From positions 124,001-188,000 of IMG/VR virus record IMGVR_UViG_3300022839_000006: a stretch of 64,000 nucleotides of DNA; one strand, given 5' to 3'. Under the pieces are notes generated by a model. The model did no database searches, was not told the origin of the DNA, and saw only the letters and a program-made list of their open reading frames with translations. Shown in pieces: positions 1 to 55,602 of this stretch (position 1 is its first letter; the number at the start of each line of letters is the position of its first letter). The position numbers and the translations under genes are program-made.

Positions 1-1688
1 TTTGTAATTGTCGAAGCAGTATTATTGTTACTTTGTATTACAAGAACATCTCTTAGTGTTTCCGCATCAAACACTTCATCGACCGCTGGTTCTACTGTTA
101 TGGTACCAGCCGAAGAAGGTGCAACTTTACTTTTTCTAATGCTGAACGACATGTCTGAAAGTGATTTTACAAAAGATTTGTTTGCATCAAAGATTAGTTT
201 TGATTCGGACGAATTGATGATTTTTGGCGTTATCTGAATTTGCCCATTAGTAGAACCTTCTTTCACGTAGCCAACATTTTCAAATGCTTGACCTGTGTTC
301 ATACGAATGGCATATAGATATACCCTGTCTCTCGTGTAGTTTTTAACAATAGCGGAACCAATTGCAACAAGTGACGAGTTCAAAAGTGAAACGTTGGCCA
401 TGGTGCCTATCGTGACACTACCAGTTGCTGCTATGACTTTACAGAAGCCGCCGTAATTGAAGTTTACTGGTTGGCTGTTAATGTCGAATGTTACAGTATT
501 TGCATTTGGAACTTCGAATATTCTTTTTGAATCGTTTGCAATGCGATATCCTTTTGAATATGCGATTCCTTCGCCCATTTCAACAAAGAATGTGTCTGTT
601 GCATCGTTCTTTACAATTTCAAATTGAAATTTGTTCTTCGTAAAGTCACCGTTTGTTTCGTACGTTCTACGTGCAAGCTCTTTAGCAATCGAATTAAATT
701 CAGAGACGTTTCTTGTTTCGACTGCGTATCCATTTTCATATCTACGAAGAATGAAAAACTCAGCATCAGCTTCTGCTGCTACTGTATTCAGTGCAATCAA
801 TCTTGGGACGAGTAGCAATCTGTCCGCACCGGGGGCGTTCTCGTTCGCTGAGCCGTTTGCGTTATCAAGCAGTGAAGTGTCCTGTTGGGAGTTAACGATT
901 GACTCATCAACTGCGTAACCCACCGATGTGTTATTAGGCTGAATTGCAAAGGGGTCTTCTTCATCAACTTCAGACAAATATTTACTAACAATGACTGTTT
1001 GATCATCAACGAATAGGAAGTGCCCACGCTGGAACACAATACCTTCGGATGAGTTAAGACCGAACGACTTTCCGATTGGGCTAGAGAAACCTGCAACTGA
1101 AGTGCTTGCTACAATGCCGTTGTCTATAGTTGTTTCGCTCGATACGCCCTCGACAACTTGTGTTCTAAGGATGTATTCTCTTACTGAAAGTGAATCGTTA
1201 GGTTCATACACTTTCTTTTCAATGCCTTCTACTTCAACGGTGTTTAGATATACCATGAAGAACGTGTTAAGGTCTGGTGCTCTACTTTGAAAACCACTTG
1301 TTCCTTGAATAATAAGAGACTTGAGACCCGAACTGTCTTCTATCTCGAAGTAATATTCATCAACCGTGCCGTCAATCTGAACTACAGTACGCTCGATAAA
1401 ATCTTCTGGTCTTGCTCTTCCTCCACCACCAGCAAGTAGAATACTATCTACAACTTTTGCATATTGAAGGTTGCGAATCTCTGTGAATGTGCAGCCCTTA
1501 ATGATTGAACCTTCTTTATAGATATTCTCCCCAAACTGTTCAATTTGGTTTTGAAGCGTTGTTTGTAGCTGAGTCAATTCTCTCGCTTGAACCGCAAAGC
1601 CAGGCTTAAAAAGCACTCTATAATATTTGTTGGCAATATCATAGTCGTCAAAGTACGGTGCAATATTCAGATCTGTTTTGATACTCAT
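1..1688 (-). CDS. VrlC/DUF4815 virion structural protein (3' end runs off the window)
   Basis: Not in the ORF track. Read manually from ATG at 1688: MSIKTDLNIAPYFDDYDIANKYYRVLFKPGFAVQARELTQLQTTLQNQIEQFG, the typical VrlC/DUF4815 N-terminus of T4-like phages; lies downstream of gp8. Confidence 0.85.
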   Translation of the reverse strand, partial: MSIKTDLNIAPYFDDYDIANKYYRVLFKPGFAVQARELTQLQTTLQNQIEQFGENIYKEGSIIKGCTFTEIRNLQYAKVVDSILLAGGGGRARPEDFIERTVVQIDGTVDEYYFEIEDSSGLKSLIIQGTSGFQSRAPDLNTFFMVYLNTVEVEGIEKKVYEPNDSLSVREYILRTQVVEGVSSETTIDNGIVASTSVAGFSSPIGKSFGLNSSEGIVFQRGHFLFVDDQTVIVSKYLSEVDEEDPFAIQPNNTSVGYAVDESIVNSQQDTSLLDNANGSANENAPGADRLLLVPRLIALNTVAAEADAEFFILRRYENGYAVETRNVSEFNSIAKELARRTYETNGDFTKNKFQFEIVKNDATDTFFVEMGEGIAYSKGYRIANDSKRIFEVPNANTVTFDINSQPVNFNYGGFCKVIAATGSVTIGTMANVSLLNSSLVAIGSAIVKNYTRDRVYLYAIRMNTGQAFENVGYVKEGSTNGQIQITPKIINSSESKLIFDANKSFVKSLSDMSFSIRKSKVAPSSAGTITVEPAVDEVFDAETLRDVLVIQSNNNTASTIT

Positions 1689-16108: not shown

Positions 16109-16705
16109 ATGGCAGCATCACTATTCGATGACATTCTATTAAAAGGACTTCGGTCAGGTCAAGTGCCTGCTCGGTCGGAGTCAGCGCGTACTTGGTTTAG
16201 AGACAAAGCAAAATCCATGGGTAAAGTATCAGAAACAAAAATTCTGAGAGATGATACTTCAAGATTGAAAAATCGTTCTGCTATAGGTAAAATGTATTTC
16301 TTCATGTATGACGCAAAGCATAAGAAAACACTTCCTTACTATGATGCGTTTCCGCTTATTTTTCCAGTTGATAGAGTCGAAGGCGGATTTTACGGACTTA
16401 ACATGCATTACCTGCCTCTGAAATTAAGAGCACAGCTAATGGACGCGCTGTACGACATAGCAAGTAATAGCAGATATGATCAAAGTACAAAGCTAAAACT
16501 CTCATACAGTGTTCTAAAAGGCGCTGAAAAATTTAAGATATTTCAGCCTACATTCAAACGATATTTGAGCAGTAACGTAAGAAGTAGATTCGTAGAAGTA
16601 GAGTCTGCAGAGTGGGACATTGCACTATTTCTCGGTTCGGAGCAATTCGTCGGCGCATCGAAAACAAAAGTCTGGGCAGATTCTAGAAAAATAATAAAAG
16701 GTTAA
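16109..16705 (+). CDS. gp2: DNA end protector gp2
   Basis: YDAKHK.TLPYYD.FPL and GLN.HYLP motifs. Confidence 0.93.
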   Translation: MAASLFDDILLKGLRSGQVPARSESARTWFRDKAKSMGKVSETKILRDDTSRLKNRSAIGKMYFFMYDAKHKKTLPYYDAFPLIFPVDRVEGGFYGLNMHYLPLKLRAQLMDALYDIASNSRYDQSTKLKLSYSVLKGAEKFKIFQPTFKRYLSSNVRSRFVEVESAEWDIALFLGSEQFVGASKTKVWADSRKIIKG

Positions 16706-16710
16706 TATAG

Positions 16711-17421
16711 ATGTTCAACATCTCAGAGTTTAAAGCAAGAATAGACCGTCACGGCGGTCCTGCTCGCACGAGTTTGTTTGAGGTGGCTATATCACCAACG
16801 AATAGACGCGGGGAACTAATCGTCCCTGGAGTTATTTCGACGGATGACCTTCGTTTCTTTTGTCAGACTGTATCCATGCCAGGCATCAACCTAGAGGTAA
16901 TGCCGTATAGACCAAATGGCTTGGGTTTTACCGAATCAATGCCAATGAACTCGTCTCCCGACCAATTAAATGCGGTATTCATGCTTGATAGTAATCAGCG
17001 TGTTATGACTTATTTTCATCGTTGGATAGCATCAGTTGTAAACGTGAATGGGAACAGAGGAGACAGTGTAACAGGACTTGCACCTAAGCTCATTGAATAT
17101 AAAGATACATATGCTGCATCTGAATTGACCATTAGACACTATTCCACGCATAACCCGTTTGAATATTATGAATGTCGCTACGAGGGTGTGTTTCCTACTC
17201 AAGTCGGCGCACTTGAGTTAAGTTGGGCTGGCGACGGCGCAGCAACAATAACCGTAAATTTCACATACAACAGAATGGTGTATTCTGGGTTTACAGAGTC
17301 GAATGTTGACGTGTCGTCCAGTTTTGTTGGGACACAAGGCTCTACAATAAGAGGCAATAACTTGGCTCAGACAATACAAGACTTCAACACGAGATCGGTT
17401 GATTTACTTACAACAGTATAA
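16711..17421 (+). CDS. Tail tube initiator (gp54/gp19-like)
   Basis: Tube-fold motifs C...MPG and FP..VG.L.L.W; follows gp2. Confidence 0.75.
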   Translation: MFNISEFKARIDRHGGPARTSLFEVAISPTNRRGELIVPGVISTDDLRFFCQTVSMPGINLEVMPYRPNGLGFTESMPMNSSPDQLNAVFMLDSNQRVMTYFHRWIASVVNVNGNRGDSVTGLAPKLIEYKDTYAASELTIRHYSTHNPFEYYECRYEGVFPTQVGALELSWAGDGAATITVNFTYNRMVYSGFTESNVDVSSSFVGTQGSTIRGNNLAQTIQDFNTRSVDLLTTV

Positions 17422-39489: not shown

Positions 39490-39561
39490 TTTGTACCCTC
39501 TGATGGTTTTACAGCGGTGCGGACGTTACATCCGCACCGCTGTATTTGTTAATTGTATATT

Positions 39562-42500
39562 TTAGGTTGTTGTCAACATCTTCTCTTTGAGATACGCTAC
39601 GAACCGTTCCGCATAAAGAACCAGTCCATCACCTACTAAAAGATGAGCATATCGCTCGTCGTACACTTCACTCATTGTTGCGCTTGGAAACACGACTGCA
39701 GGTCCTTGACTTGTTATGTCATAAAGCTCTTCGGGCAGTTTACCTTGTTGTAGAGCCTCTTGAAAATCGACATATTCAATTTCATTCGTTTCCACATCTA
39801 CAATAGGGATCATTCCGTCCCTGAATATAAATGTGGTTGTTGGCGCAAAGTTGTCCATTAACTGTTCCGTAATGTAATTTTTGAAGGTAGATACCTTGTT
39901 ATTATTACAGTATACACCCTCAGCCAAGTGTTTGTCAACGTTTTGTTTTGTGGCTAACTCAACTTCGTACACTTGCTGAATGCGCAACTGCGCAGGCGGA
40001 TTGAACACGCACCATTCAGGCGATCTGATACCACCACCTGCTCCAGGGACACCTGCAACCTGATAGTCTGTTCTTTTTTCCCCAAGGTTGACGTCCATCG
40101 AGAACAAATAGCCCTTTTGGCCTGCACGTCTTGAGTAACCGCCGTTAGAAACATATTGTAGCGCTTTGTCGACCTTGTTGCTGAAATATATACCGTCACC
40201 AAGCATTCTACCAACAACGCCTGAATCAGAAGGCTTGATGACTCTGAACCCATATCTCAATATCATTGATGCTGCAACACCACCTGTACCATGGTAAGCA
40301 GGTTCTACTGTTCCATCACCAAACTTGTTTTTGCGGAAGTCGTCAAACAGAGGGTTGTCTGTTGTTCCGTCATATACGTTTAGAATCTTAGGAAACACAT
40401 CGCCATGCTTTCCTGCATGATCTCTTTGAATAATGGTTTTGTTCAGCGCATTAACGTTTATAGTATCGTTTTTTGCAATCTCCGGTTCGGGAAGAATTGT
40501 CCCTTTCCGAGCAATTGTAGCTTTTGCGCGTGCAAAGAACTGTGTATACGTCTCGCCCTTCTTTTTCTTTGATACTGCGCCTGATACAATTGCAGACAAA
40601 TCAATGTCGTTGTATAAAAACAGCTGCTTTAATCTATTGTTATCGATTTTATCGAACGGTTTAATCTCTCCGCTAGAAATTTCATCTATCAAAACTTGCG
40701 AGCCGACAAGTGACATTCTAATCTTCTGTACAACATGAGGTGCGAGCCCATCGATGATGTCATTGACATAATCTTCGACATCTGTGCCAATAGTGTCAAG
40801 AATGATTCCTGTTAACACTTCAACATATTTACCTTTCTCGTCTTTGCGGATGCTTTTATACAGTCCTACACTCATAATGTATTTCTTCTGTGAGGATTTT
40901 GCGAATCTCATCCACTCTAATACTGTCTCTGATGTTGCACTTGAAAGAAGGTTCATGATAGTATCGCCACCCTTTGACGTATCAAAATCAAAACCGGTGT
41001 CTTTCTTTGCAACGATCAGTGACGCTTTGGCCAAAGCGTCACTGATCTTGTCTTTATCACCAGGCGCATATTTTGCGACACTTAGATTGCTGTAGAAACT
41101 GTTTCTTGATTCAAGGAAGTCTACTAACACTTGTGTATCAAGATCCCCAACGCCGTCACGTCGAACCTTCACTCCCACTAGTGCCTCATCGTTGGGGAAT
41201 TTAGCCATCATTTGATCAAGATCAATGTTAAGCACTCTAACAACTTTGACAGTTTTATCTACATTATATATACTATTTGAACCTATTAATTTGCCTATCA
41301 ACGACTTTTCAAAACCTACATCTACAAGGTCCGCTGCATAGCGGTCGTGCAGCAGCTCAAAGAGCATGCCGCCGTTTTGAGGAGCCTGTGTATCATACAC
41401 CTCTCCCTTTCTGAATTCTTCAAACAATTTTGGAACGATAGAAGCCTCATAGGTAGAAAACAAATCAGCTTGAATGAAGTGTTGAGCCATCTTCTCAATA
41501 CGGTCCATCGTTGACTGTTTAAGTCTCGTAGTTACATCGGTAACTTTTGATCTACTGTCTCCTGATACTATAAGCAATTCTATAAAATTTGCCTGCGACG
41601 CTCCAACAGTCACTGTATCGTTGTACACAGTTGATAAGAAATCTATCGGCTGTGCAGCAACAAATTCCACCAGCATCTGGTCATAATATCTTCCATATTG
41701 GATATCACCACTAGGATACGATCGCGTTAAGCCATTAAATGTGTTTTGAATAAGCATTTTGCTTGAGATTTCCGGATCAGAAACAATGAACGATATCAAT
41801 CTTTGTTTTTGTTTTTCCTGAACAGTGTTTTTGTATACATCTGATAGAAGAGAACTATAAAATTCACCTATATTGATTATACGCTTTATTAGTGGATCTT
41901 TTGCCTCTATTTCAAGTGCAGCGTTTATAAACGCTGCAACAGATGATTTGCGATAGGACGCCATTTTACCACTACTGTATATCTGATCGACGAACATTTC
42001 AAGAAAACCAATTGGCGTATATTTAGTCTTCCGTACAGCATTAGCTTGTTTAAGCACTGGTGTAAAATCTTGGGAGGTGTCACGATCTCTAAAAGCTTCA
42101 ATATAATTTTCAACGTTAGTCACAGTTTTATATATTGCTTCAAATGCTTGGCGAGGTGCATCAGGTAAATTATCAGCATAAATCAAGGTATCTGCAAGAT
42201 TGTATTTTGTTTTAACAAATTTAAGGGCCGCTGCTGCAAGTGCATCACTTTGATACATACCGTCCACGTGTATATCTACAAGGAGCTTTATGCCCTCATC
42301 AATCAATTGATCTATGTCGATGTTACTTGCAACTAATGTCTGCGCTGCCTCTCTTTCCTTCTGATCAATAGCAGCCTGAGCATCACGTGCCTTCTGATCA
42401 ATAGCAGCCTGAGCATCAATCGCTTGTTGTGCTTGTTGTGCTTGTTGTGCAGCAGCTTGTTTAATCTGTTTTTGACGTTGATAATAACCCAGCTTCGGTG

Positions 42501-43281
42501 CTGTAGGCGCAGGAACAGCAGGGTCAACAGGCGCACCTGTCAGTGCCGCAAGCTTCTTCAGTTTTTGACGTTGATAATAGTTCATTGGTGGTGCAACAGC
42601 AGGTGTTGTAGTGACCTGAGCTGACGGATCAACAATTGGTGTTGGCACTGTAGGAGCTGCAGGTACCGCAGCTGTGGCCATAGGAGACACTCCAGCAGGC
42701 TGCGGTGTTATTTCTGTCAATCCAAAGAATCTCTTGGCATATTTTTGATAGTCACCACCACCATCAACTGTATTGACTCTCTTCTTCAATTGAACAGCAA
42801 ATCTGGAAACATCAACAGCCGTTCCGCCACCACCTACGAAATCATCAAATACTTGACGCATCTTTGCATCTTTAATATTCAATCGGAAACTTGGAACCAT
42901 CCCTCTAAGCCATCCTGCAACAACGTTCGAGTCAATAGAATCGATTTGGCCTGATTTCAACTTGAAAAGGAATTTTGTTATTTCGTTTGCTGTGATGTCC
43001 TGCTTGAAGAATCCTGCCTCATGAGCCAACTTCACGGACAATGAAATGTCATGGTTATCATCGCCGATTGATCCAAGACGTACCTGTTTGTCTTTGCGCA
43101 AGAACTTGATAATTGTTCCACGTTGGGTAGGGCTCGTTGCGTTAATCATCCCCAGCATTCCGAGAAAGTTAAACATGAAAGCAGCAGCAACTCGATCTTT
43201 ATCTGCGAGTAACGCAGCTCTTTCTGCATCGTTAGAGTAAAGAGAATTTTCCCCAAGAAAAGATTTGAAGTTTTTGGTCAT
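39562..43281 (-). CDS. Large putative virion-packaged protein with PARP-like (H-Y-E) ADP-ribosyltransferase domain
   Basis: YHGT...GF...G.MLGDGIYFS...KALQY...V.LG...EWCVF; late promoter GATAAATA at 43320-43327; start MTKNFKSFLGE. Confidence 0.8.
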   Translation of the reverse strand: MTKNFKSFLGENSLYSNDAERAALLADKDRVAAAFMFNFLGMLGMINATSPTQRGTIIKFLRKDKQVRLGSIGDDNHDISLSVKLAHEAGFFKQDITANEITKFLFKLKSGQIDSIDSNVVAGWLRGMVPSFRLNIKDAKMRQVFDDFVGGGGTAVDVSRFAVQLKKRVNTVDGGGDYQKYAKRFFGLTEITPQPAGVSPMATAAVPAAPTVPTPIVDPSAQVTTTPAVAPPMNYYQRQKLKKLAALTGAPVDPAVPAPTAPKLGYYQRQKQIKQAAAQQAQQAQQAIDAQAAIDQKARDAQAAIDQKEREAAQTLVASNIDIDQLIDEGIKLLVDIHVDGMYQSDALAAAALKFVKTKYNLADTLIYADNLPDAPRQAFEAIYKTVTNVENYIEAFRDRDTSQDFTPVLKQANAVRKTKYTPIGFLEMFVDQIYSSGKMASYRKSSVAAFINAALEIEAKDPLIKRIINIGEFYSSLLSDVYKNTVQEKQKQRLISFIVSDPEISSKMLIQNTFNGLTRSYPSGDIQYGRYYDQMLVEFVAAQPIDFLSTVYNDTVTVGASQANFIELLIVSGDSRSKVTDVTTRLKQSTMDRIEKMAQHFIQADLFSTYEASIVPKLFEEFRKGEVYDTQAPQNGGMLFELLHDRYAADLVDVGFEKSLIGKLIGSNSIYNVDKTVKVVRVLNIDLDQMMAKFPNDEALVGVKVRRDGVGDLDTQVLVDFLESRNSFYSNLSVAKYAPGDKDKISDALAKASLIVAKKDTGFDFDTSKGGDTIMNLLSSATSETVLEWMRFAKSSQKKYIMSVGLYKSIRKDEKGKYVEVLTGIILDTIGTDVEDYVNDIIDGLAPHVVQKIRMSLVGSQVLIDEISSGEIKPFDKIDNNRLKQLFLYNDIDLSAIVSGAVSKKKKGETYTQFFARAKATIARKGTILPEPEIAKNDTINVNALNKTIIQRDHAGKHGDVFPKILNVYDGTTDNPLFDDFRKNKFGDGTVEPAYHGTGGVAASMILRYGFRVIKPSDSGVVGRMLGDGIYFSNKVDKALQYVSNGGYSRRAGQKGYLFSMDVNLGEKRTDYQVAGVPGAGGGIRSPEWCVFNPPAQLRIQQVYEVELATKQNVDKHLAEGVYCNNNKVSTFKNYITEQLMDNFAPTTTFIFRDGMIPIVDVETNEIEYVDFQEALQQGKLPEELYDITSQGPAVVFPSATMSEVYDERYAHLLVGDGLVLYAERFVAYLKEKMLTTT
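42358..42418. repeat. 28-bp direct repeat (33-nt period) in the ART gene linker
   Basis: CTTCTGATCAATAGCAGCCTGAGCATCA occurs twice, encoding DAQAAIDQK twice. Confidence 0.85.
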
Positions 43282-43350
43282 TGTGCACGGTATCCTTGTG
43301 AAAGCTGGTGTGTCTTGCTTATTTATCAAAACACTCCAGCTTCGACTCTT

Positions 43351-43668
43351 TCACGTAAATTTTACAGACGTGTGCCAATATTCAACTTGTTCAGATGTCA
43401 CGATCATTTCAGGATTATCATCAATCCACACATCAACCTTGATGTTGTTGTCTTCCGCAAACGTCTTCTTATAACTGCCGCCTGTCGGCCTACAATTGTG
43501 TACTCCAATAGTCACGCCAAGTGTATCATACACTTTCTGCATCTCGTCGTGTCGTCTGAACGTGATGCACAGAACTGTATGTCCCCTCTCCATAGCTGAT
43601 TTGGCCCACAACGTCCAAAGGTCAGGATCTGCCGTATAAGTCCCATCAAAATCCAAAGCAAAAATCAT
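43351..43668 (-). CDS. Small HAD-superfamily hydrolase
   Basis: ALDFDGT, IT.R, K, WIDD.P motifs; start uncertain. Confidence 0.85.
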   Translation of the reverse strand: MIFALDFDGTYTADPDLWTLWAKSAMERGHTVLCITFRRHDEMQKVYDTLGVTIGVHNCRPTGGSYKKTFAEDNNIKVDVWIDDNPEMIVTSEQVEYWHTSVKFT

Positions 43669-43729
43669 GTCTTTATCTATCCCTGACATACAAAAATTAG
43701 CACCCCAAATCACAAGGATGCTATTTTTA

Positions 43730-44056
43730 TTACATTGTGCGTGCTACACTCGAAAGCTTCTGGTAGTATGTTGCTGCTGTGCCGCGTGACACGCCTTGCT
43801 TGACTGCAAGGTCGATCACGTCTTTGCGACGAAGCAAACCGTAGTTTGCTTGAAAGATTTGACGAAATTCAGCAACAGGAGATACAATCGAGGACGATAC
43901 AGGTGAATCTTTTTTTGTCTTTGCTTTTGCAGGAAGTGTGACAAGAATTTTACCGCCATCGCGTTTGGTGAAAATGGGCTGTACCAAGCCTGCGCGAACT
44001 GCACCGCGCTTTGCACTTGACATTGAGGTGTATGTTTTTTCAAAGTTCTTAGTCAT
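43730..44056 (-). CDS. Basic hypothetical protein, possibly DNA-binding
   Basis: C-terminal RKDVI..AV..GV...TA.TYYQ HTH-like segment. Confidence 0.55.
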   Translation of the reverse strand: MTKNFEKTYTSMSSAKRGAVRAGLVQPIFTKRDGGKILVTLPAKAKTKKDSPVSSSIVSPVAEFRQIFQANYGLLRRKDVIDLAVKQGVSRGTAATYYQKLSSVARTM

Positions 44057-44145
44057 TTTTATGTTCCGTTTATTTGTTGCTGTTTGCTTACCTTTATAAG
44101 CTAGCGCCAAGCAAATAGAATGGCAACAATGTTTTTGGAACATTC

Positions 44146-44643
44146 TTAACTAATTTCTACCAGACTGACTTTTATCTGTTTTTCACCTCTGAGTTGAGCA
44201 GCGACGACAGCATGGTGCCCATCACTTATGAAGAACCTCCCAGCATACTTAACAACATGGATGTGGTTAGGGTTTGTGTTTGTGATCTTGTCGCGTAGCT
44301 TTTCAACGTCGTTTGTCATGACGTATGGCTGTGTGGCAACCAACTGACTGATGTTCAATGTGGTCTGTTTGTTCATCTTGTCGTACTGACGCTGGCCTTC
44401 ATCTCTCACCTTCTTATCTACGTCTTCCATTCCCAACTCCATCTGCAAGTCATATAGTGCCTCTGCTGCCTGACTTGAAAGTTTTTCATCGAAGGACGTA
44501 AGGGGGATGTGACCTCCCTTTGGGACCTTCTCCCATGTGCCAAAGCTTGAACGTGTGCCGTATCTACGTGATGCACGCTGCGCGAGCCTTACAGGGTCCA
44601 CCTTACGTTCAAATAATTGACAAAATTGTGTAAAAAGTATCAT
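44146..44643 (-). CDS. ParB/Srx-like domain protein
   Basis: I..L.ATQ and I.VV...G..FI.DGHH...A. Confidence 0.7.
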   Translation of the reverse strand: MILFTQFCQLFERKVDPVRLAQRASRRYGTRSSFGTWEKVPKGGHIPLTSFDEKLSSQAAEALYDLQMELGMEDVDKKVRDEGQRQYDKMNKQTTLNISQLVATQPYVMTNDVEKLRDKITNTNPNHIHVVKYAGRFFISDGHHAVVAAQLRGEKQIKVSLVEIS

Positions 44644-44726: not shown

Positions 44727-45060
44727 TTAGTTTAGGTCGATGTTGAACACTTTGAATGGAAATTGTTCAGAAGAATATATCTCAATTCGCTTCTTAAAGT
44801 GGTCTAATGTATAGTTAGTGTATGCGCCATGGGTGATATCATCAGCAATGTCATACAGTGTAGCTTCGTCAGCATTGTTACCCTTTCTTAGCACTCTACC
44901 AATGGATTGAAGAATACGAACTTCTGATTTTGATCCTGAGGCGAGAATTAGATTATCAAGCCGCTTGATCGACACACCTGTGGAGAAATGTTCCATACGA
45001 AGCAAGTATATTGTGATTCTTAACAGCGTATGACCTCCGTTCTATTTTAGTCGGTTTCAT
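44727..45060 (-). CDS. uvsW: UvsW helicase C-terminal part (contains a +1 frame discontinuity at 44985-44988)
   Basis: ATG at 45060 with GAGGA SD gives MKPTKIERRSYAVKNHNILASYGTF; the +1 frame continues STGVSIKRLDN...LQSIGRVLRK. Confidence 0.8.
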
Positions 45061-46201
45061 TTATAATTTCCTCTATTTTATGTTCATATCCATTTAACAT
45101 ACCGTATCTTTCACAATATATCTTTATGATGTTGTGTAAATTTTCAATCGAAGTTCTATACCACCCTCTATCTGTAAGAGGATCCTTGCTAACTTTATTT
45201 TTTAGTTTATACGCTTTAATAATTTTTATTTCTATACGTTTTGCAAGTTCTGTATTTGGAGTTTTAGTATTTAATTTTCTGGAGTATTTTCCGTATGTTT
45301 TTATTATTTCATCATCAGCTAAATCTTCTAATAGATGTATCATGTCACTTGGTATTTTATTTCTTATATGACTTATTTTTCTGCTTTTTAGTGTTCTTTC
45401 TTTGTAATTTGGATCTTTCCAAAGTTCTGAAATGGCAGATCCATCAGAACCTCTGTATTTCCTATTTTTCATTTTTTCTATAAAGACTTCATCATTTTTC
45501 CAAAGACTTTTTAATTTTTTAGAAGCTTGTTCTTTTTTCTCTTTTGATCCATTTATTTTTTTCATAGTATTTTTGAAATTGTTAAAATCGCTTTCGGACA
45601 TTTCAGAATATCTCTTATTCAGCGCATCTGAATATCTTTGTGTACCATTTATTATATTATACTCTATCATGTCTTTTGATTTTTGCTCTCGTCTTTCAGG
45701 TATCCACCACCTTTTTAATTGCTCTGATTTTTTAACACGATTTTCTGGAGAATTGCCAATGGCAGACATATTTTTAGAATGCCCATTGAGCATTTGTGCT
45801 CTGGCAATGTTTCTTCTTTTTTCTCTCCAGTCTTCATATTTTGGAGACTTTTTAAATTCTATCCACGCATTTTTTGTCGCCGTTGATATTATTTTTCTAT
45901 ATTCTTTTGATTCTCTGGTAGTTTTAGGAAGCATAAAGTTTAATGGTCTCGTAAATCTCCTTATTGGATACGCTTTTGACAATAGAAAATGTGCTTCCAC
46001 GTGATCGGTATATGTTAAAGCATATACTAAATCATTTGCGTATATACATCGTGGAATTATATGGTGATCTTCACAATATAATTCTGATGAAATCTTGTCT
46101 GTTTTATTTTCAAGAACAAAATCTATATATTTTTCTAGTGTAGACTCGTCTGATGGATCACCCAAAAGTTCAACAAATTTATCAAATATGATCTTTTCCA
46201 A
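45047..46201 (-). mobile_element. HNH (MobE-like) homing endonuclease inserted in uvsW
   Basis: HHIIPRC...LT..DH..AH.LL.K.Y; Lys-rich C-terminus; visibly AT-rich; own late promoter GATAAATA (46223-46230) and AAGGAG SD. Confidence 0.85.
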
Positions 46202-46242: not shown

Positions 46243-47595
46243 TCAACCGCCATTAGCTTTATTTTTTATCCAATTTTCGGAAATGTCAGAATTTTCGGTT
46301 ATATTTTTTCCTAAACAGACAGATCCGTCAGTAAGAATTACTTGTTCATCTTCTTCTATTTCAAGTTTATGTTCACCGAAAAAAAGAACTACCATTGTTT
46401 TGTTATCATTTTCGATTAAATGTCGAATTCGTTCTCGTTCTTCTCCTTTGGTATCTCCGTAGATGAAGTGAAGATTTGTATCTGGGCTTTCAAGCATTGG
46501 AGCAAGAACCTTACCATGCTTCTCTACAAGTTCAAACAAAATAAGATTGTTCTGACCTTTGAGTGACCATACGAGATTGCGTATGAATGTGTTTCTCTTA
46601 CTGCTATTTATGATGAACTCGCGCTCTGCATGGTAACGCTCTTCTTTTTTCAGCTTCTTAATTGCCTTTGAGAACGTTGACCGTGTCTGTGCAGGATGTT
46701 TGAGAACAATTGCTTTGACATTAAATGTTGCAACTGTACCACTATCAATTAGGTCCTTTGTCGATACATATCTCTTAACATTTCCAAATAGTCCTGTCAA
46801 GATTAAAACGTGTGTTTTAGAATCAGAGGAGATGGTACCAGTAAAGCCAAATCTGTAGGGAGCTTCAGTGCATTTTTCCATGATCTGGGTAAGCGACTTG
46901 CCTGTAAACAAATGTGCCTCATCACCCATCACAACGCGGAATTGGTCAAACCACTCCTTTTGTAACGGTCCTAACGACTGCCATGTTGATATTACAATTT
47001 GTGCCGAGGTGTTTTTATCAACACCCCCTTGGATCTTGTATATCAAACTTGGATCACAGCCATAATCGATGAAGTCTCCTGCCATCTGATGTACAAGGGA
47101 AATTGTTGGGACAATTATTAGAACACGGTGTTGAAAGGCAGAAATGTAGTGGTGAGATATTAAATACTGCATGAACGATTTGCCACTAGAAGTTGGCGAA
47201 AGAGATAGGGTTCTCTTTTTACGAATGGCATTAACAATGTAGTCGTTTTGATACTCACGAAGCTCGAGCTTCGTCCCTGTTTCTTTTGCTAGTTGGTATC
47301 CGTAGTCATCAGGAACATTTGGTTCGTCGCATATTTCTTTGTCTACAATCAGATCATACGATCTGATTTCACAAAATTGTCGAAGCTGATCGATTAGACC
47401 TATGTGGAGATAAGGCTTGAATGGGGTGATCAGGCGAATGTACCCATCCCAAACCTTCGCCTTGTACTTCGGTGAGAATTGATAGTTTGCAGGTTGGAAG
47501 GCAAAGAATTCCATCAACTCTTGCATTATGCTCACATCAGCGATTACCTTCATGTGAACTTCGTTCATTTTCTCAACTCGAATTGTATCAGTCAC
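46243..47595 (-). CDS. uvsW: UvsW helicase N-terminal part
   Basis: LREYQ, SPTSSGKS, DEAH, GFTGT; ends with a ~53-aa foreign extension after ...IEND. Confidence 0.93.
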   Translation of the reverse strand: MTDTIRVEKMNEVHMKVIADVSIMQELMEFFAFQPANYQFSPKYKAKVWDGYIRLITPFKPYLHIGLIDQLRQFCEIRSYDLIVDKEICDEPNVPDDYGYQLAKETGTKLELREYQNDYIVNAIRKKRTLSLSPTSSGKSFMQYLISHHYISAFQHRVLIIVPTISLVHQMAGDFIDYGCDPSLIYKIQGGVDKNTSAQIVISTWQSLGPLQKEWFDQFRVVMGDEAHLFTGKSLTQIMEKCTEAPYRFGFTGTISSDSKTHVLILTGLFGNVKRYVSTKDLIDSGTVATFNVKAIVLKHPAQTRSTFSKAIKKLKKEERYHAEREFIINSSKRNTFIRNLVWSLKGQNNLILFELVEKHGKVLAPMLESPDTNLHFIYGDTKGEERERIRHLIENDNKTMVVLFFGEHKLEIEEDEQVILTDGSVCLGKNITENSDISENWIKNKANGG

Positions 47596-50498: not shown

Positions 50499-51119
50499 AT
50501 GATGTCATTTAAACAGCACGTGAATGAAAACTATAAGAATTTTATAGGACCTGTAGAAACAAGAATTCAACGTGAGAAGTGGATTGATCGGGTGTGGGAC
50601 ATCGTACAGAAGTCTTACGCACCGATTGGTGGAATTCAAGGTAGCGGTTTTGGCTCTAAAAAAGATATGATCGAAAAGATCCCCTTTTGGAAATTGTACA
50701 CAAAAGGGGATAACCTTGTGGCTGCAGCCTTCTATAAAGATAAAGGCGGCAGAAAGTCAGTGGCAATTGCCACTGACGGGTCCGATCTTGGTAAGAAAGT
50801 TGTTGGAGATATTTTTAAGGCGTCTCTTGGTGTTTCATATGGTGAAAAGTCAGGACCTTCTCTTGCAATGATGATAAAAACAGTCCCGTGGGACGTGTTG
50901 CAGAACTTCATGCTTACACCAAAGCAAATATCAAAAATTAGTAGCGTGGACGTAATGACAGTGGCAGAGTTTGGTGTAGAACAATTGAACACGAAAGACA
51001 AATTAACGTACGACAAATTTCCTCAATTACGTCCTTTCTTCTACATCAGATCACTTGGCGGTGAGATGCATCTGAAAGCTGCTATGGGAACTCCAAATCT
51101 TGGTATAATGTCAAAATAG
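50499..51119 (+). CDS. Late protein with capsid-targeting-like N-terminus
   Basis: TATAAATA at 50461; N-terminus MMSFKQHVNE. Confidence 0.65.
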   Translation: MMSFKQHVNENYKNFIGPVETRIQREKWIDRVWDIVQKSYAPIGGIQGSGFGSKKDMIEKIPFWKLYTKGDNLVAAAFYKDKGGRKSVAIATDGSDLGKKVVGDIFKASLGVSYGEKSGPSLAMMIKTVPWDVLQNFMLTPKQISKISSVDVMTVAEFGVEQLNTKDKLTYDKFPQLRPFFYIRSLGGEMHLKAAMGTPNLGIMSK

Positions 51120-54485: not shown

Positions 54486-54737
54486 ATGTTTGAAGTTATA
54501 ATTATGATTTGTGCTAGTTCTTTTGCACTTGAGGTCGATTTTGACAATTGCATATACATAAAGGATGCGTGGGGTCCGTATAAGACAGAACACTACTGTG
54601 AGATAAGGTCAGATCAATTGTCAGAAGAACTACTTGTTGGTGAGCTTAATAGGCACTTTACAGTAATGTTAGACTATCCTGAGATGTTGTCTGCAATGGG
54701 ACATTGTCGAAAAGTGGACGGCGATGAAATGACATAA
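54486..54737 (+). CDS. Small Cys-containing, possibly exported protein
   Basis: Hydrophobic N-terminus; GPY....C motif. Confidence 0.55.
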   Translation: MFEVIIMICASSFALEVDFDNCIYIKDAWGPYKTEHYCEIRSDQLSEELLVGELNRHFTVMLDYPEMLSAMGHCRKVDGDEMT

Positions 54738-54765
54738 ATAACTGTAACCTCTAAATAGGAAGCAG

Positions 54766-55077
54766 TTGATGAATACGTTTAAGGAATATATCGTTGAGTC
54801 AGAAGCACAGCTCAAAGCAGCAGGTGTTTCAAAATACAATGAACCAAAAAGAACACCCTCACATGCAACAAAATCGCACGTGGTTGTCGCCAAAGAGGGT
54901 GGTAAAATTAAACTGATTCGGTTTGGTGAGCAAGGTGCTGAAACTGCTGGTGAGCCCAAAAAAGGCGAATCTGATAGAATGATAGCCAAGCGCAAATCGT
55001 TCAAAGCGCGACACGGTGAAGACATCGCTCGCGGCAAAATGAGTGCAGCATATTGGTCCGACAAAGAAAAGTGGTAA
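54766..55077 (+). CDS. Small basic late protein with capsid-targeting-like N-terminus
   Basis: CATAAATA at 54733; MNTFKEYIVE; K.IRFG.QG, SF.ARH, SA.YW...W. Confidence 0.7.
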   Translation: MMNTFKEYIVESEAQLKAAGVSKYNEPKRTPSHATKSHVVVAKEGGKIKLIRFGEQGAETAGEPKKGESDRMIAKRKSFKARHGEDIARGKMSAAYWSDKEKW

Positions 55078-55158
55078 TTGACAATGACTACCGTTGACTA
55101 AAAAGGTAGTCATTGTATACTACGGATCTGTGTATAACCTACAAATGGAAGATTTATT

Positions 55159-55602
55159 ATGAAAATTGAGTATCGTCGCGGCGATGTGTTAACCACAGAC
55201 ATCGCCCACATTATCCACGGCTGTAATAGTCACGGAGTGATGGGCTCTGGCGTTGCTAAGATGGTCAGATCAAAATATCCCCCAGCATATCAAAGATACG
55301 TAGATGAGTATAACCGTGTCGGTCTTGAACTGGGCACGGTCATCCCTTCTATCCAACGTGACGACAAAGTGATTTACAACGCCATCACGCAGCAAAACTA
55401 CGGCAACAATAAAAATGTAGTGTATGTGTCATATTGGGCCATTGCTGAAGCTTTCAGATACATTGACTCGGCCGTCAACATTAAACAGATTGCGCTGCCG
55501 ATGATTGGTGCAGGATTAGCAAATGGAAATTGGGACGTAATCTCCGCAATTATAGAAAACACCCTGACACGAACATTGCCTGTGGTATACGTCTATGGGT
55601 GA
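55159..55602 (+). CDS. Macrodomain (ADP-ribose processing) protein
   Basis: GDV...I.HGCN..G.MGSGVA and P.IGAGLA.G.W. Confidence 0.9.
   Translation: MKIEYRRGDVLTTDIAHIIHGCNSHGVMGSGVAKMVRSKYPPAYQRYVDEYNRVGLELGTVIPSIQRDDKVIYNAITQQNYGNNKNVVYVSYWAIAEAFRYIDSAVNIKQIALPMIGAGLANGNWDVISAIIENTLTRTLPVVYVYG

Follow-up and report, generated by a model that had tools for sequence, protein, structure and literature searches.

A giant PARP-type ADP-ribosyltransferase of a T4-like phage as a candidate Alt analogue delivered by the capsid

Introduction

T4 Alt, an ADP-ribosyltransferase (ART) of the R-S-E class, is the textbook case of an enzyme injected into the host together with phage DNA. Do T4-like phages also deliver an ART of another class in this way? 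The question is raised by one gene in a window of 64,000 nucleotides, positions 124,001 to 188,000 of the IMG/VR record IMGVR_UViG_3300022839_000006. The sequence comes from salt-lake metagenomic DNA and belongs to a T4-like phage. The original prediction took the product of this gene for a giant PARP-type ART built like a processed, injected protein, and proposed a macrodomain encoded elsewhere in the window as the eraser of its modification.

Organization of the gene and its product

A single open reading frame (ORF) on the minus strand, followed by its stop codon, fills positions 39562-43281 and encodes a 137-kDa protein of 1239 aa counted from ATG (Table 1). A longer form beginning with TTG at 43329 is possible, without support. 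The late-promoter-like motif in front of the gene, GATAAATA, matches T4 TATAAATA in seven of eight positions. TATAAATA stands ahead of most structural genes in the genome, and the G variant GATAAATA recurs 31 nt upstream of the gene of the gp21-like protease and 27 nt upstream of the Ps15 homologue. As another gene precedes the ART gene on the same strand, read-through from earlier promoters is also possible; the sequencing runs found were of DNA only. The gene is located outside the head module, adjoins gp55, gp47 and gp46, and has a gene for a phrog_4256 protein as its upstream neighbour.

The conserved N-terminal domain, called here the type A module, gave no match in a fold search; among cultured phages it was seen only at the start of this PARP-type protein family. 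The two YYQRQK copies noticed in the linker region are real (residues 235-240 and 266-271) and restricted to close relatives, each with one or two copies. The helical body (residues 320-929) matched no Pfam family and no WGR domain, its fold matches stayed at noise level, and residues 1-869 were modelled as purely alpha-helical, without a WGR-like sheet. The C-terminal tail is present family-wide (62-156 aa, median 92), and a search for a stand-alone paralogue of the C-terminal domain (residues 1149-1239) found none. PARP is the sole Pfam domain of the protein, and its PHROG match is a family of unknown function. A polyvalent or MuF-fused head effector was considered and rejected, since Pfam detected PARP alone and no MuF/portal-associated or further effector domain.

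Table 1. Positions of the features of the ART gene and of the macrodomain gene in the window
Feature	Position	Strand	Remarks
Whole ORF	39562..43281	-	1239 aa plus stop
Late-promoter-like motif GATAAATA	43320..43327	-	38 nt upstream of ATG
Ribosome-binding site AAGGA	43293..43297	-	ahead of ATG
Residues 1-11, MTKNFKSFLGE, capsid-targeting-like propeptide	43249..43281	-	predicted protease site LGE-11
Residues 12-190, conserved all-alpha N-terminal domain (type A module)	42712..43248	-	pLDDT ~95
Residues 191-267, disordered Pro/Ala-rich linker	42481..42711	-	holds first YYQRQK (42562-42579)
Residues 268-319, long single helix, Q- and A-rich	42325..42480	-	start spanned by second YYQRQK (42469-42486)
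Residues 320-929, all-alpha solenoid-like body	40495..42324	-	poorly conserved
Residues 930-1113, PARP-type ART domain	39943..40494	-	H997, Y1032, K1039, Y1043, E1089
YHGT, H997	40291-40293	-	catalytic His
GIYFS..K..QY, Y1032/K1039/Y1043	40153-40188	-	catalytic Tyr is Y1032 (40186-40188)
EWCVF, E1089	40015-40017	-	catalytic Glu
Residues 1114-1148, inter-domain linker	39838..39942	-	two conserved protease-type sites
LAE-1121 protease-type site	39919-39927	-	102/134
FKNYITE-1139 protease-type site	39865-39885	-	124/134; family consensus [KMS][ST]FK.[FY]LxE|[AS]
Residues 1149-1239, beta-rich C-terminal domain	39565..39837	-	pLDDT >90
Macrodomain protein, candidate ADP-ribose eraser, TARG1/SCO6735-like	55159..55602	+	
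Sigma-70-type promoter TTGACT-16-TATACT of the macrodomain gene	55094-55121		

The PARP-type ADP-ribosyltransferase domain

The assignment of a PARP catalytic domain to this 1239-aa protein is borne out by Pfam, a PDB profile search and fold comparison, all of which place it in the H-Y-E PARP class, distinct from the R-S-E class of T4 Alt. The Pfam PARP model (PF00644) scored 35.5 bits over residues 951-1069, above its curated cut-off of 26.7 bits (E 1e-8), the own-genome scan with the same model gave 38.4 bits, and a profile built from the family matched PARP1 with E 1.3e-8. The AF2 model of the domain (pLDDT 90) matched PARP1/PARP2 in Foldseek with E 1.9e-10 and probability 1.00; VIA-align returned Z 15.5 against both PARP1 and PARP2, with 187 aligned residues and an rmsd of 3.6 A to 6nri.

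The proposed triad elements YHGT, GIYFS..K..QY and EWCVF all fall within ~39960-40400, as predicted. In the HMMER alignments H997, Y1032, K1039 and Y1043 pair with PARP1 H862, Y896, K903 and Y907; E1089, which lies beyond the end of these alignments, presumably corresponds to PARP1 E988. Conservation was assessed in 135 aligned sequences, comprising the query and 134 representatives clustered at <=50% identity. H997 is retained in 133 of the 135 and Y1032, K1039, Y1043 and E1089 in all of them, and no other region of the protein comes near the ART domain in conservation, the helical body being the least conserved. The intact and invariant active site suggests, at the level of sequence, that the domain is catalytically competent. 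The residue aligned with Ser904, which anchors nicotinamide in PARP1, is Ala here and A, V or S across the family.

The domain has in common with the catalytic domains of PARP1, PARP2 and tankyrase the fold, the H-Y-E triad and the signature elements 'HG', 'G.GIYF' and 'K..Y' with the strand ahead of His. Unlike these enzymes, to which it shows only ~15-20% identity, it has Ala at the Ser904 position and belongs to a viral protein with a 900-residue helical carrier and a beta-rich tail, in which no WGR, zinc-finger, BRCT, ankyrin, SAM or recognisable PARP_reg helical domain is present. Pfam gave no WGR or PARP_reg match in the query or in the N-terminal parts of 53 relatives; a weak WGR match is on record only in some distant relatives (P0045). 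PMC9503650 includes the PART (PARP) family in its list of the most frequent viral ARTs.

Conserved protease-type sites at the module boundaries

The motifs flagged as possible processing signals, namely the start MTKNFKSFLGE, HLAE (1118-1121) and STFKNYITE (1131-1139), exist as written. The protein contains 18 [LIVM]-x-E motifs, and family-wide conservation was found for only three of them: LGE-11 (125/134 sequences), LAE-1121 (102/134) and ITE-1139 (124/134), with each of the others kept in at most 31 of the 134. The three motifs picked from the sequence beforehand are exactly these three, an agreement beyond what chance would give. E11 is the single invariant column within the first 200 residues (67 sequences), and the P3 position of the N-terminal site is L, I or V in 115 of 119. 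The three conserved L-x-E motifs sit at module boundaries, bracketing the mature body, and low-confidence stretches of the AF2 model lie in or beside them (residues 1-10 with pLDDT 48, 1124-1131 and 1139-1143, both below 50). In the model, residues E11-N12-S13-L14-Y15 belong to an ordered stretch of the N-domain; the conservation of a short [LIV]-x-E motif could be structural instead.

The genome supplies a protease of the matching type, a gp21 homologue with 41% identity to T4 gp21, and its gp23 retains L-x-E at the maturation site, LNE-58 aligning with LTE-65 of T4. Three other late ORFs begin in a similar way (M..FK.[FYH]..[LIV]xE), with MNTFKEYIVE, MKSFKEFNVTE and MMSFKQHVNE. Altogether four ORFs with an M-x(0-3)-F-[KQ..]-x-[FYH]-..-[LIV]-x-E start were found, all behind NATAAATA motifs (Poisson P ~1e-6), and one of them, which encodes a neighbouring small protein with a start like a capsid-targeting sequence (CTS), weakly matches the 'minor head protein and DNA pilot' family. 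IPI, IPII and IPIII, which are internal proteins of T4, carry the capsid-targeting sequence MKTYQEFIAE, and the resemblance consists in a start of ~10 residues with the pattern aromatic-K/Q-x-aromatic, ending in [LI]-x-E and common to several late proteins of one genome. The IPs are small and basic, whereas here such a motif stands at the start of a 137-kDa enzyme and appears again inside it, ahead of the C-terminal domain. In many relatives only 4-5 residues precede the conserved E, too few for a T4-style targeting sequence of 10 residues; hence this prefix alone cannot hold the targeting. The C-terminal ~100 residues, suggested earlier to be a module released by the protease, may be such a functional module or, by analogy with Alt, a discarded propeptide.

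The protein family and its kinship with Alt

At E<1e-30 the family comprises 189 clusters (50% identity), mostly of 1100-1600 aa, in T4-like phages of Aeromonas, Stenotrophomonas, Pseudomonas, Ralstonia, Xanthomonas and salt-lake hosts. Known phage homologues (1183-1395 aa) are 30-38% identical in the N-domain, in the ART domain plus tail, or in both. Cultured relatives include Aeh1, phiAS5, Ps15/Moby, pf16 and RSP15. The helical body is swapped among at least four N-module types across the family, and some members link the family to Alt directly. The Alt profile phrog_802 is matched at its positions 5-182 by residues 3-174 of P0054 (E 9.8e-12) and also by P0047 (E 9e-7); both carry an Alt-family N-module ahead of a PARP domain, with the PARP triad and both post-ART sites kept. 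In RSP15, ORF128 (Alt/VIP2-type ART) adjoins ORF127 (PARP-type), and the two have in common an N-module of 200 aa, 66% identical (E 4e-81). As Alt and the PARP-type family coexist in some phages (Aeh1, RSP15), the latter is not a simple replacement of Alt. The genome studied here gave no PF03496, phrog_802 or phrog_15144 match that would indicate an Alt of its own, and no similarity of the 1239-aa protein, including its type A N-domain, to T4 Alt was detected.

T4 Alt is cut at both ends, at ITE-6 and LTE-619 (PMC5694885), by gp21 (PMC5694885; PMC9026906). Both proteins are large products of T4-type phages, the present one presumably late, and in both the ART domain occupies the C-terminal part, while [LI]-x-E closes a short N-terminal propeptide (LGE-11 here) and occurs again ~60-120 residues before the C-terminus (LAE-1121/ITE-1139 here); relatives of the present protein bear the Alt N-module or have their N-module in common with an Alt-type paralogue. 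The double cut of T4 Alt, the Alt N-module in P0054 and P0047 and the common N-module in RSP15 lend support to the Alt-like role put forward at the outset. Unlike Alt, the present protein is nearly twice as long, is of the H-Y-E PARP type instead of the R-S-E clade, has no sequence similarity to Alt, and starts with a type A N-domain unrelated to the Alt N-module; packaging and cleavage, proven for Alt, are predicted here. The Ps15 paper names the domain only, and neither it nor PMC9503650 describes the layout of protease sites or the links to Alt modules.

The macrodomain and NAD+ genes

The macrodomain gene announced at 55159 was verified (55159-55602, plus strand; Pfam Macro, E 4.6e-9), and the motif in front of it, a sigma-70-type promoter of its own, gives it the appearance of an early gene. 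It lies 12 kb from the ART gene on the opposite strand, and the link between the two is circumstantial. In Aeh1 the homologue directly follows an ADP-ribosylglycohydrolase gene, and such an ART-ADP-ribosylglycohydrolase gene pair of Aeromonas phages has been read as a toxin-antitoxin pair (PMC9503650). No PF03747 (ADP-ribosylglycohydrolase) match was found anywhere in the genome studied here. An ART-ARG (DraT/DraG-like) toxin-antitoxin pair was accordingly rejected for this locus, where the adjacent gene encodes the phrog_4256 protein. The phage also encodes NadV (NAD+ salvage), which fits an NAD+-consuming enzyme and does not separate a transferase from a glycohydrolase.

Proposed role and its significance

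The reading that we favour, and consider reasonably likely, is that the protein is a packaged, processed and injected PARP-class (H-Y-E) analogue of Alt, that is, an NAD+-dependent ART effector delivered by the capsid. The arrangement of its motifs makes packing into the capsid, followed by injection, probable. The ART gene would be transcribed late from the GATAAATA promoter, and the full-length 137-kDa protein would enter the prohead core, with the CTS-like elements at the N-terminus and ahead of the C-terminal domain as candidate targeting determinants. The gp21-type protease would then cut after LGE-11 and after LAE-1121 and/or ITE-1139, removing the 11-residue propeptide and detaching the last ~100 residues; these cuts are suggested by the precedent of T4 Alt and by motifs that are conserved and fall within or next to stretches of low model confidence. 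The mature protein (~residues 12-1121 or 12-1139) would be kept in the head and ejected with the DNA, and in the new host its ART domain would move ADP-ribose from NAD+ onto host macromolecules at the onset of infection. Later, as a speculation, the early TARG1/SCO6735-like macrodomain and the phage NadV might limit the modification and restore NAD+.

If the family is packaged, a second ART class, known in eukaryotes as the maker of poly(ADP-ribose), would be delivered in the manner of Alt by many T4-like phages. One could then ask what PARP-type modification acts on in bacteria as infection begins, and by what chemistry (mono or poly; protein, DNA or RNA), and the predicted maturation cut sites could be checked in an existing cultured phage. 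The swapped modules, i.e., the Alt N-module joined to a PARP domain and the tandem pair of RSP15, hint at which parts deliver and which act, and may be useful for capsid targeting beyond T4. A bolder extension, tentative and probably not right in full, is that T4-like phages possess modular capsid-delivery carriers (at least four N-module types with a protease-cut propeptide) on which R-S-E and H-Y-E ART warheads are exchanged. The injected PARP warhead would synthesize poly(ADP-ribose), or attach ADP-ribose to the ends of nucleic acids, in bacteria within seconds of infection, and an early macrodomain or ARH would erase the marks, forming a timed writer/eraser circuit with the first injected PARP-class effector in any virus.

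Alternative explanations

One alternative, unlikely in our view, is an ART that stays out of the virion and acts on components of host or phage inside the infected cell, its L-x-E motifs being structural. In one version it would be the toxin of a toxin-antitoxin-like writer/eraser pair serving superinfection exclusion or lysis timing. That the gene is surrounded here by genes of replication, recombination and transcription, and follows gene 32 in relatives, speaks for an intracellular enzyme, as does the order of genes in Aeh1, and no virion proteomics for any relative was found in the literature. However, an ARH gene is absent from this genome and the macrodomain gene is distant, on the other strand and under its own promoter; moreover, an enzyme confined to the cell leaves unexplained why exactly three L-x-E motifs are conserved at module boundaries, the CTS-like start common to other late ORFs, the late-promoter motif and the N-modules common to Alt-type proteins. 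The packaged effector accommodates these features and is preferred.

Packaging itself might serve a different end. A non-enzymatic helical body, with a conserved N-domain, accounts for three quarters of the protein. Acting as a structural or ejection component, this 900-residue part could help to organize the DNA, to pilot it or to cross the envelope, the ART domain modifying phage DNA or head proteins or being secondary. The small CTS-like protein with its weak 'DNA pilot' match and a weak, non-significant structural likeness to a cyanophage pre-ejectosome chain (Z 7.1) point in this direction, but the fold matches of the body are at noise level. A conserved ART domain with an invariant active site, attached to the least conserved and repeatedly swapped body, fits an enzyme carrier better than a core structural part, which makes a mainly structural role quite improbable. 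The least probable proposal, to which we give very little weight, is that no ADP-ribose reaches macromolecules and the domain is an NAD+ glycohydrolase depleting NAD+ or a binding pseudo-enzyme. The variable position aligned with Ser904 would agree with this, and NADases do occur among H-Y-E-clade domains (PMC9503650). Against it, the residues H, G, Y, K, Y and E hardly vary, if at all, among the 135 diverged sequences, which argues for a working catalytic site.

A PARP-type catalytic domain

Residues 951–1069 of the 1239-aa protein match the Pfam PARP family (PF00644) with 35.5 bits (curated cut-off 26.7). A single-sequence search of solved structures returned PARP2 and PARP1 as the only, weak matches; a profile from 71 family members reached PARP1 with an E-value of 1.3e-8, followed by PARP2 and the tankyrases, and the PARP alignment takes in the strand preceding the catalytic histidine as well as the "G.GIYF...K..Y" motif. 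For the AlphaFold2 model of residues 870–1239 (mean pLDDT 90), the catalytic domains of PARP1, PARP2 and PARP4 occupied the top Foldseek ranks (E 2e-10, probability 1.00), and VIA-align gave Z 15.5 over 187 residues against the human PARP1 ADP-ribosyltransferase (ART) domain and Z 14.7 against tankyrase (model residues 61–244, corresponding to protein residues 930–1113).

The MAFFT alignment comprised 135 sequences, namely the subject protein and 134 representatives, each of more than 900 aa, from clustering at no more than 50% identity. Y1032, K1039, Y1043 and E1089 are each present in all 135, G998 in 134 and H997 in 133. The H-Y-E triad put forward in the original prediction is thus borne out: its near invariance, together with the PARP fold matches, indicates that it is real and under strong constraint. 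The assignment to a class other than that of Alt, the packaged and injected R-S-E enzyme of T4, also stands, as the protein carries the PARP-type domain and BLASTP against T4 Alt detected no similarity. Several searches of the phage genome for an Alt-type ART likewise found none. The phage enzyme is thus predicted to be of the PARP type, and our confidence in the enzyme class alone is much higher than that in the complete mechanism discussed below. Two features set it apart from canonical PARPs. At the position that aligns with PARP1 Ser904, the subject protein has Ala and the family A, V or S, and neither Pfam nor the model reveals a PARP_reg domain or a WGR domain, the latter looked for because one relative has a weak WGR match.

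Family members in other phages

With residues 755–1239 as the query, a full HMMER scan against 1.84 billion cluster representatives yielded 442 matches at E up to 1e-3, 189 of them at E up to 1e-30. Among the best 150 of the 442, nearly all are 1000–1700 aa long and have their ART domain close to the C-terminal end. Among cultured phages, homologues are encoded by Aeromonas phages of the Aeh1/phiAS5/PX29 group, the Stenotrophomonas Menderavirus group, Xanthomonas phages X1 and BUDD, Ralstonia phage RSP15, Pseudomonas phage pf16 and Ochrobactrum phage vB_OspM_OC. The survey by Iyer and colleagues placed PART (PARP) enzymes among the commonest viral ARTs (PMC9503650), and the paper on Ps15 mentions its homologue merely as the second largest protein. 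Literature searches turned up no virion proteomics for any of the relatives. One relative (P0045, 1469 aa, from locus L015) has a weak WGR match on record, N-terminal of the PARP domain; nucleic-acid sensing of the PARP1-3 kind is therefore possible for some members of the family. The P0045 gene is flanked by gene 32 and a dexA-like gene, a position matched in Ps15 and X1.

Architecture and predicted processing of the protein

The ART gene is a single ORF of 1239 codons starting with ATG, preceded 12 nt 5' by an AAGGA ribosome-binding site. The segments distinguished in the two AlphaFold2 models are listed in the table; the model of residues 1–869 had a mean pLDDT of 78. No significant structural or family match was obtained for the N-domain or the body, and the only matches from fold searches with residues 1–869 were to helical repeats, at the level of noise (Foldseek E>1e-3; VIA-align Z up to 8.2), while ESM Atlas scores of 0.65 or less have value as leads only. 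The ART domain is the best-conserved part; the N-domain and tail are moderately conserved, and the body shows almost no conservation. The linker repeat occurs in one or two copies per linker and in close relatives only; in the model its first YYQRQK copy forms a short helix, and the beginning of the long helix falls within the second.

Features of the phage genome and of the ART protein (nucleotide positions refer to the window, or to the whole genome record where marked G000)
Feature	Position	Strand	Remarks
Hairpin	39510–39544		perfect 14-bp stem; between ART gene end and gene 55 start
ART gene	39562–43281	-	
Repeated motif (K)L[NS]YYQRQKLKK	42469–42579	-	linker of ART protein
165-aa protein	44146–44643	-	Pfam VapB-like antitoxin, 27.7 bits vs cut-off 27; ParB-like nuclease weakly
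92-aa ORF	44727–45005	-	QSIGRVLR, read from sequence as helicase motif VI-like
384-aa ORF	45047–46201	-	CEDHHIIPR, read from sequence as HNH-like motif
450-aa ORF	46243–47595	-	separated from 92-aa ORF by 384-aa ORF
206-aa protein	50499–51119	+	CTS-like start MMSFKQHVNE; behind TATAAATA motif
102-aa basic protein	54769–55077	+	start MNTFKEYIVE; promoter-like CATAAATA at 54733–54740
Macrodomain gene	55159–55602		
250-aa acidic protein	G000: 16337–17089 (outside window)	+	CTS-like start MKSFKEFNVTE; behind TATAAATA motif
NadV-type nicotinamide/nicotinate phosphoribosyltransferase	G000: 43106–44605 (outside window)	+	PF04095, E 9e-51; TATAAATA 29 nt upstream
ART protein segment	residues 1–10		disordered (AlphaFold2)
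N-domain	residues 12–190		all-alpha, very confident (AlphaFold2)
Linker	residues 191–267		Pro/Ala-rich, disordered (AlphaFold2)
Long helix	residues 268–319		50 residues (AlphaFold2)
Body	residues 320 to ART domain		all-alpha, solenoid-like (AlphaFold2)
Helix after ART domain	residues 1112–1125		AlphaFold2
Low-confidence stretches	residues 1124–1131 and 1139–1143		AlphaFold2
Beta-rich domain	residues 1149–1238		confident (AlphaFold2)

The T4 prohead protease gp21 cleaves after Glu in [L/I]-x-E and takes off the short N-terminal propeptides of Alt and of the internal proteins, the latter propeptides being capsid-targeting sequences (CTS) (PMC9026906). By mass spectrometry, T4 Alt was shown to be trimmed at its N-terminus (ITE-6) and also at its C-terminus (LTE-619), where 63 residues are lost (PMC5694885). 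The ART protein contains 18 [LIVM]-x-E motifs, and the three originally singled out proved to be exactly those kept across the 134 representatives: LGE-11 in 125, LAE-1121 in 102 and ITE-1139 in 124, with the next best retained in 31. All three are located in or beside disordered or uncertain segments of the models. E11 is the sole invariant column within the first 200 residues (67 sequences); the prefix before it is variable in sequence and 4 to 57 residues long (median 10), often starting M-x-K-x-F-x-x-[FY], and position P3 of this site is L, I or V in 115 of 119 sequences. At the internal site the family shares the consensus [KMS]-[ST]-F-K-x-[FY]-L-x-E followed by [AS], with Met at the first position in 16 of the 135 sequences; this site reads like an independent targeting sequence. 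The last ~100 residues may be either a propeptide like that of Alt or a small protein set free on cleavage; a tblastn search with the 112 C-terminal aa gave no match, and HMM searches of the genome and of the relatives' loci for a stand-alone paralogue of the tail or N-domain found none. The phage encodes homologues of T4 gp21, gp22 and gp23. Its protease is 41% identical to T4 gp21, and SLLNE-58 of its gp23 aligns with the T4 maturation site SFLTE-65, so the two enzymes probably share their specificity.

Late-promoter motifs and other CTS-like starts

The T4 late promoter, TATAAATA, was found ahead of most structural genes. A variant, GATAAATA, lies 31 nt upstream of the protease gene and 38 nt upstream of the ART gene, and the same variant stands 27 nt upstream of the Ps15 homologue, following a terminator. 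When 482 ORFs of at least 60 aa were scanned for the start pattern M-x(0-3)-F-[KRQNSE]-x-[FYH]-x(0-2)-[LIV]-x-E, four carried it at the N-terminus, the ART protein included (Poisson P ~1e-6), and all four have a NATAAATA motif 28–38 nt upstream. Elsewhere in the 76,542 residues the pattern occurs only three times, once as the internal FKNYITE of the ART protein. Together these ORFs resemble the T4 complement of internal proteins with a CTS. The start of the 102-aa protein is a near copy of both the T4 internal-protein targeting sequence and STFKNYITE of the ART protein; its phrog_7595 match begins at residue 12, a "minor head protein and DNA pilot" family is weakly matched, and it is probably head-internal and ejected. 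The 206-aa and 250-aa proteins, for which no Pfam or PHROG family was found, are candidate internal proteins.

N-terminal modules shared with Alt-type proteins

Across the family, the PARP-type domain and tail stand behind at least four unrelated N-terminal modules: that of the subject protein (residues 12–190, type A) and three others. In each of them a short prefix comes first, followed by an invariant [LI]-x-E. The other N-termini, provisionally labelled type B, did not hold together as one group, since iterative HMM searches split them into three unrelated ones (P0054/47/65; RSP15/P0076; pf16/P0098/99/121); an hhalign comparison of the mixed alignment with Alt (probability 9.6%) was not relied on.

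Only the P0054/47/65 group matches the Alt profile. Residues 3–174 of P0054 (locus L021) match positions 5–182 of phrog_802 with E 9.8e-12, and P0047 matches this profile with E 9e-7. By their predicted domains, these two metagenomic proteins join a T4 Alt-family N-terminal module to a PARP-type ART, and neither has lost the PARP triad or either of the post-ART sites. As P0054 rests on a single 5.6-kb contig of only 2.8x coverage, the second case, P0047, carries weight. Ralstonia phage RSP15, whose genome is complete (L017, LC121084.1 99086–106407), has the PARP-type ORF127 adjoining ORF128, an Alt/VIP2-type ART (PF03496, E 2e-6; phrog_802, E 3e-32). The two have in common a 200-residue N-terminal module, 66% identical (E 4e-81), and nothing else. 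This predicted pair is a natural case of "same carrier, two warheads" in a cultured phage, and a carrier-plus-warhead design would give just such a delivery-type module bearing either ART class. Both types occur in Aeh1 and RSP15, which rules out Alt replacement as a general rule, and Ps15, pf16 and X1 lack Alt; the two types are therefore alternatives or partners rather than strict substitutes.

Proposed packaging and a rival toxin reading

The most likely mechanism, which we favour as a whole chain with moderate confidence, would be that of a PARP-class ART made late, packaged in the capsid, trimmed by gp21 and injected. The original prediction is to this extent supported, as far as sequence analysis reaches. 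The weak points of the packaged-ART reading are the shortness of the [LI]-x-E-type motif, the very short prefixes in some relatives, the variant form of the late promoter, and the location of the ART gene outside the head module. A further weak point is the pairing of the homologue in Aeromonas phages with an ADP-ribosylglycohydrolase (ARH), which fits a toxin-antitoxin reading; the "ART-ARG" pair of Aeromonas phages, probably Aeh1 ORF131c/ORF132c, has been read as a toxin-antitoxin pair (PMC9503650). A search of the present genome for ARH and NADAR found neither.

A possible counterpart of the ART is the macrodomain gene, which had been proposed as a candidate eraser and was confirmed to be real. 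The solved structures nearest to its product are those of bacterial macrodomain proteins (5m31, 5e3b) and of C6orf130 (TARG1); TARG1 and the 5e3b protein (SCO6735) take ADP-ribose off proteins. The gene, situated just downstream of that for the 102-aa protein, is directly preceded by a TTGACT-16-TATACT promoter, lacks a CTS and is probably early, and a timed writer/eraser relation between ART and macrodomain is possible. Phage PARP-type ARTs and packaged ARTs are already known separately. In the literature searched, the PARP/packaging combination, the two-ended processing layout and the module exchange with Alt-type proteins are not described. The genome also encodes NadV, i.e., NAD+ salvage in a phage with a predicted NAD+-consuming enzyme.

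Source virus and gene neighbourhood

The window covers bases 124001–188000 of a 208-kb virus record, which CheckV rates complete, and the sequence was present only in DNA runs of salt-lake metagenomes. A 12-kb megablast against the phage collection gave no match; the source is a T4-like myovirus without a close cultured relative. Downstream of the ART gene, on the same strand, lies gp55, the late sigma factor (phrog_234, E 3e-52), and two further same-strand ORFs are read, from sequence and position, as the gp47/gp46 recombination nuclease pair. The hairpin may be a terminator or a processing site isolating the ART transcript. On the other side of the ART gene, the layout of the 92-aa, 384-aa and 450-aa ORFs resembles that of a helicase gene interrupted by a homing endonuclease.
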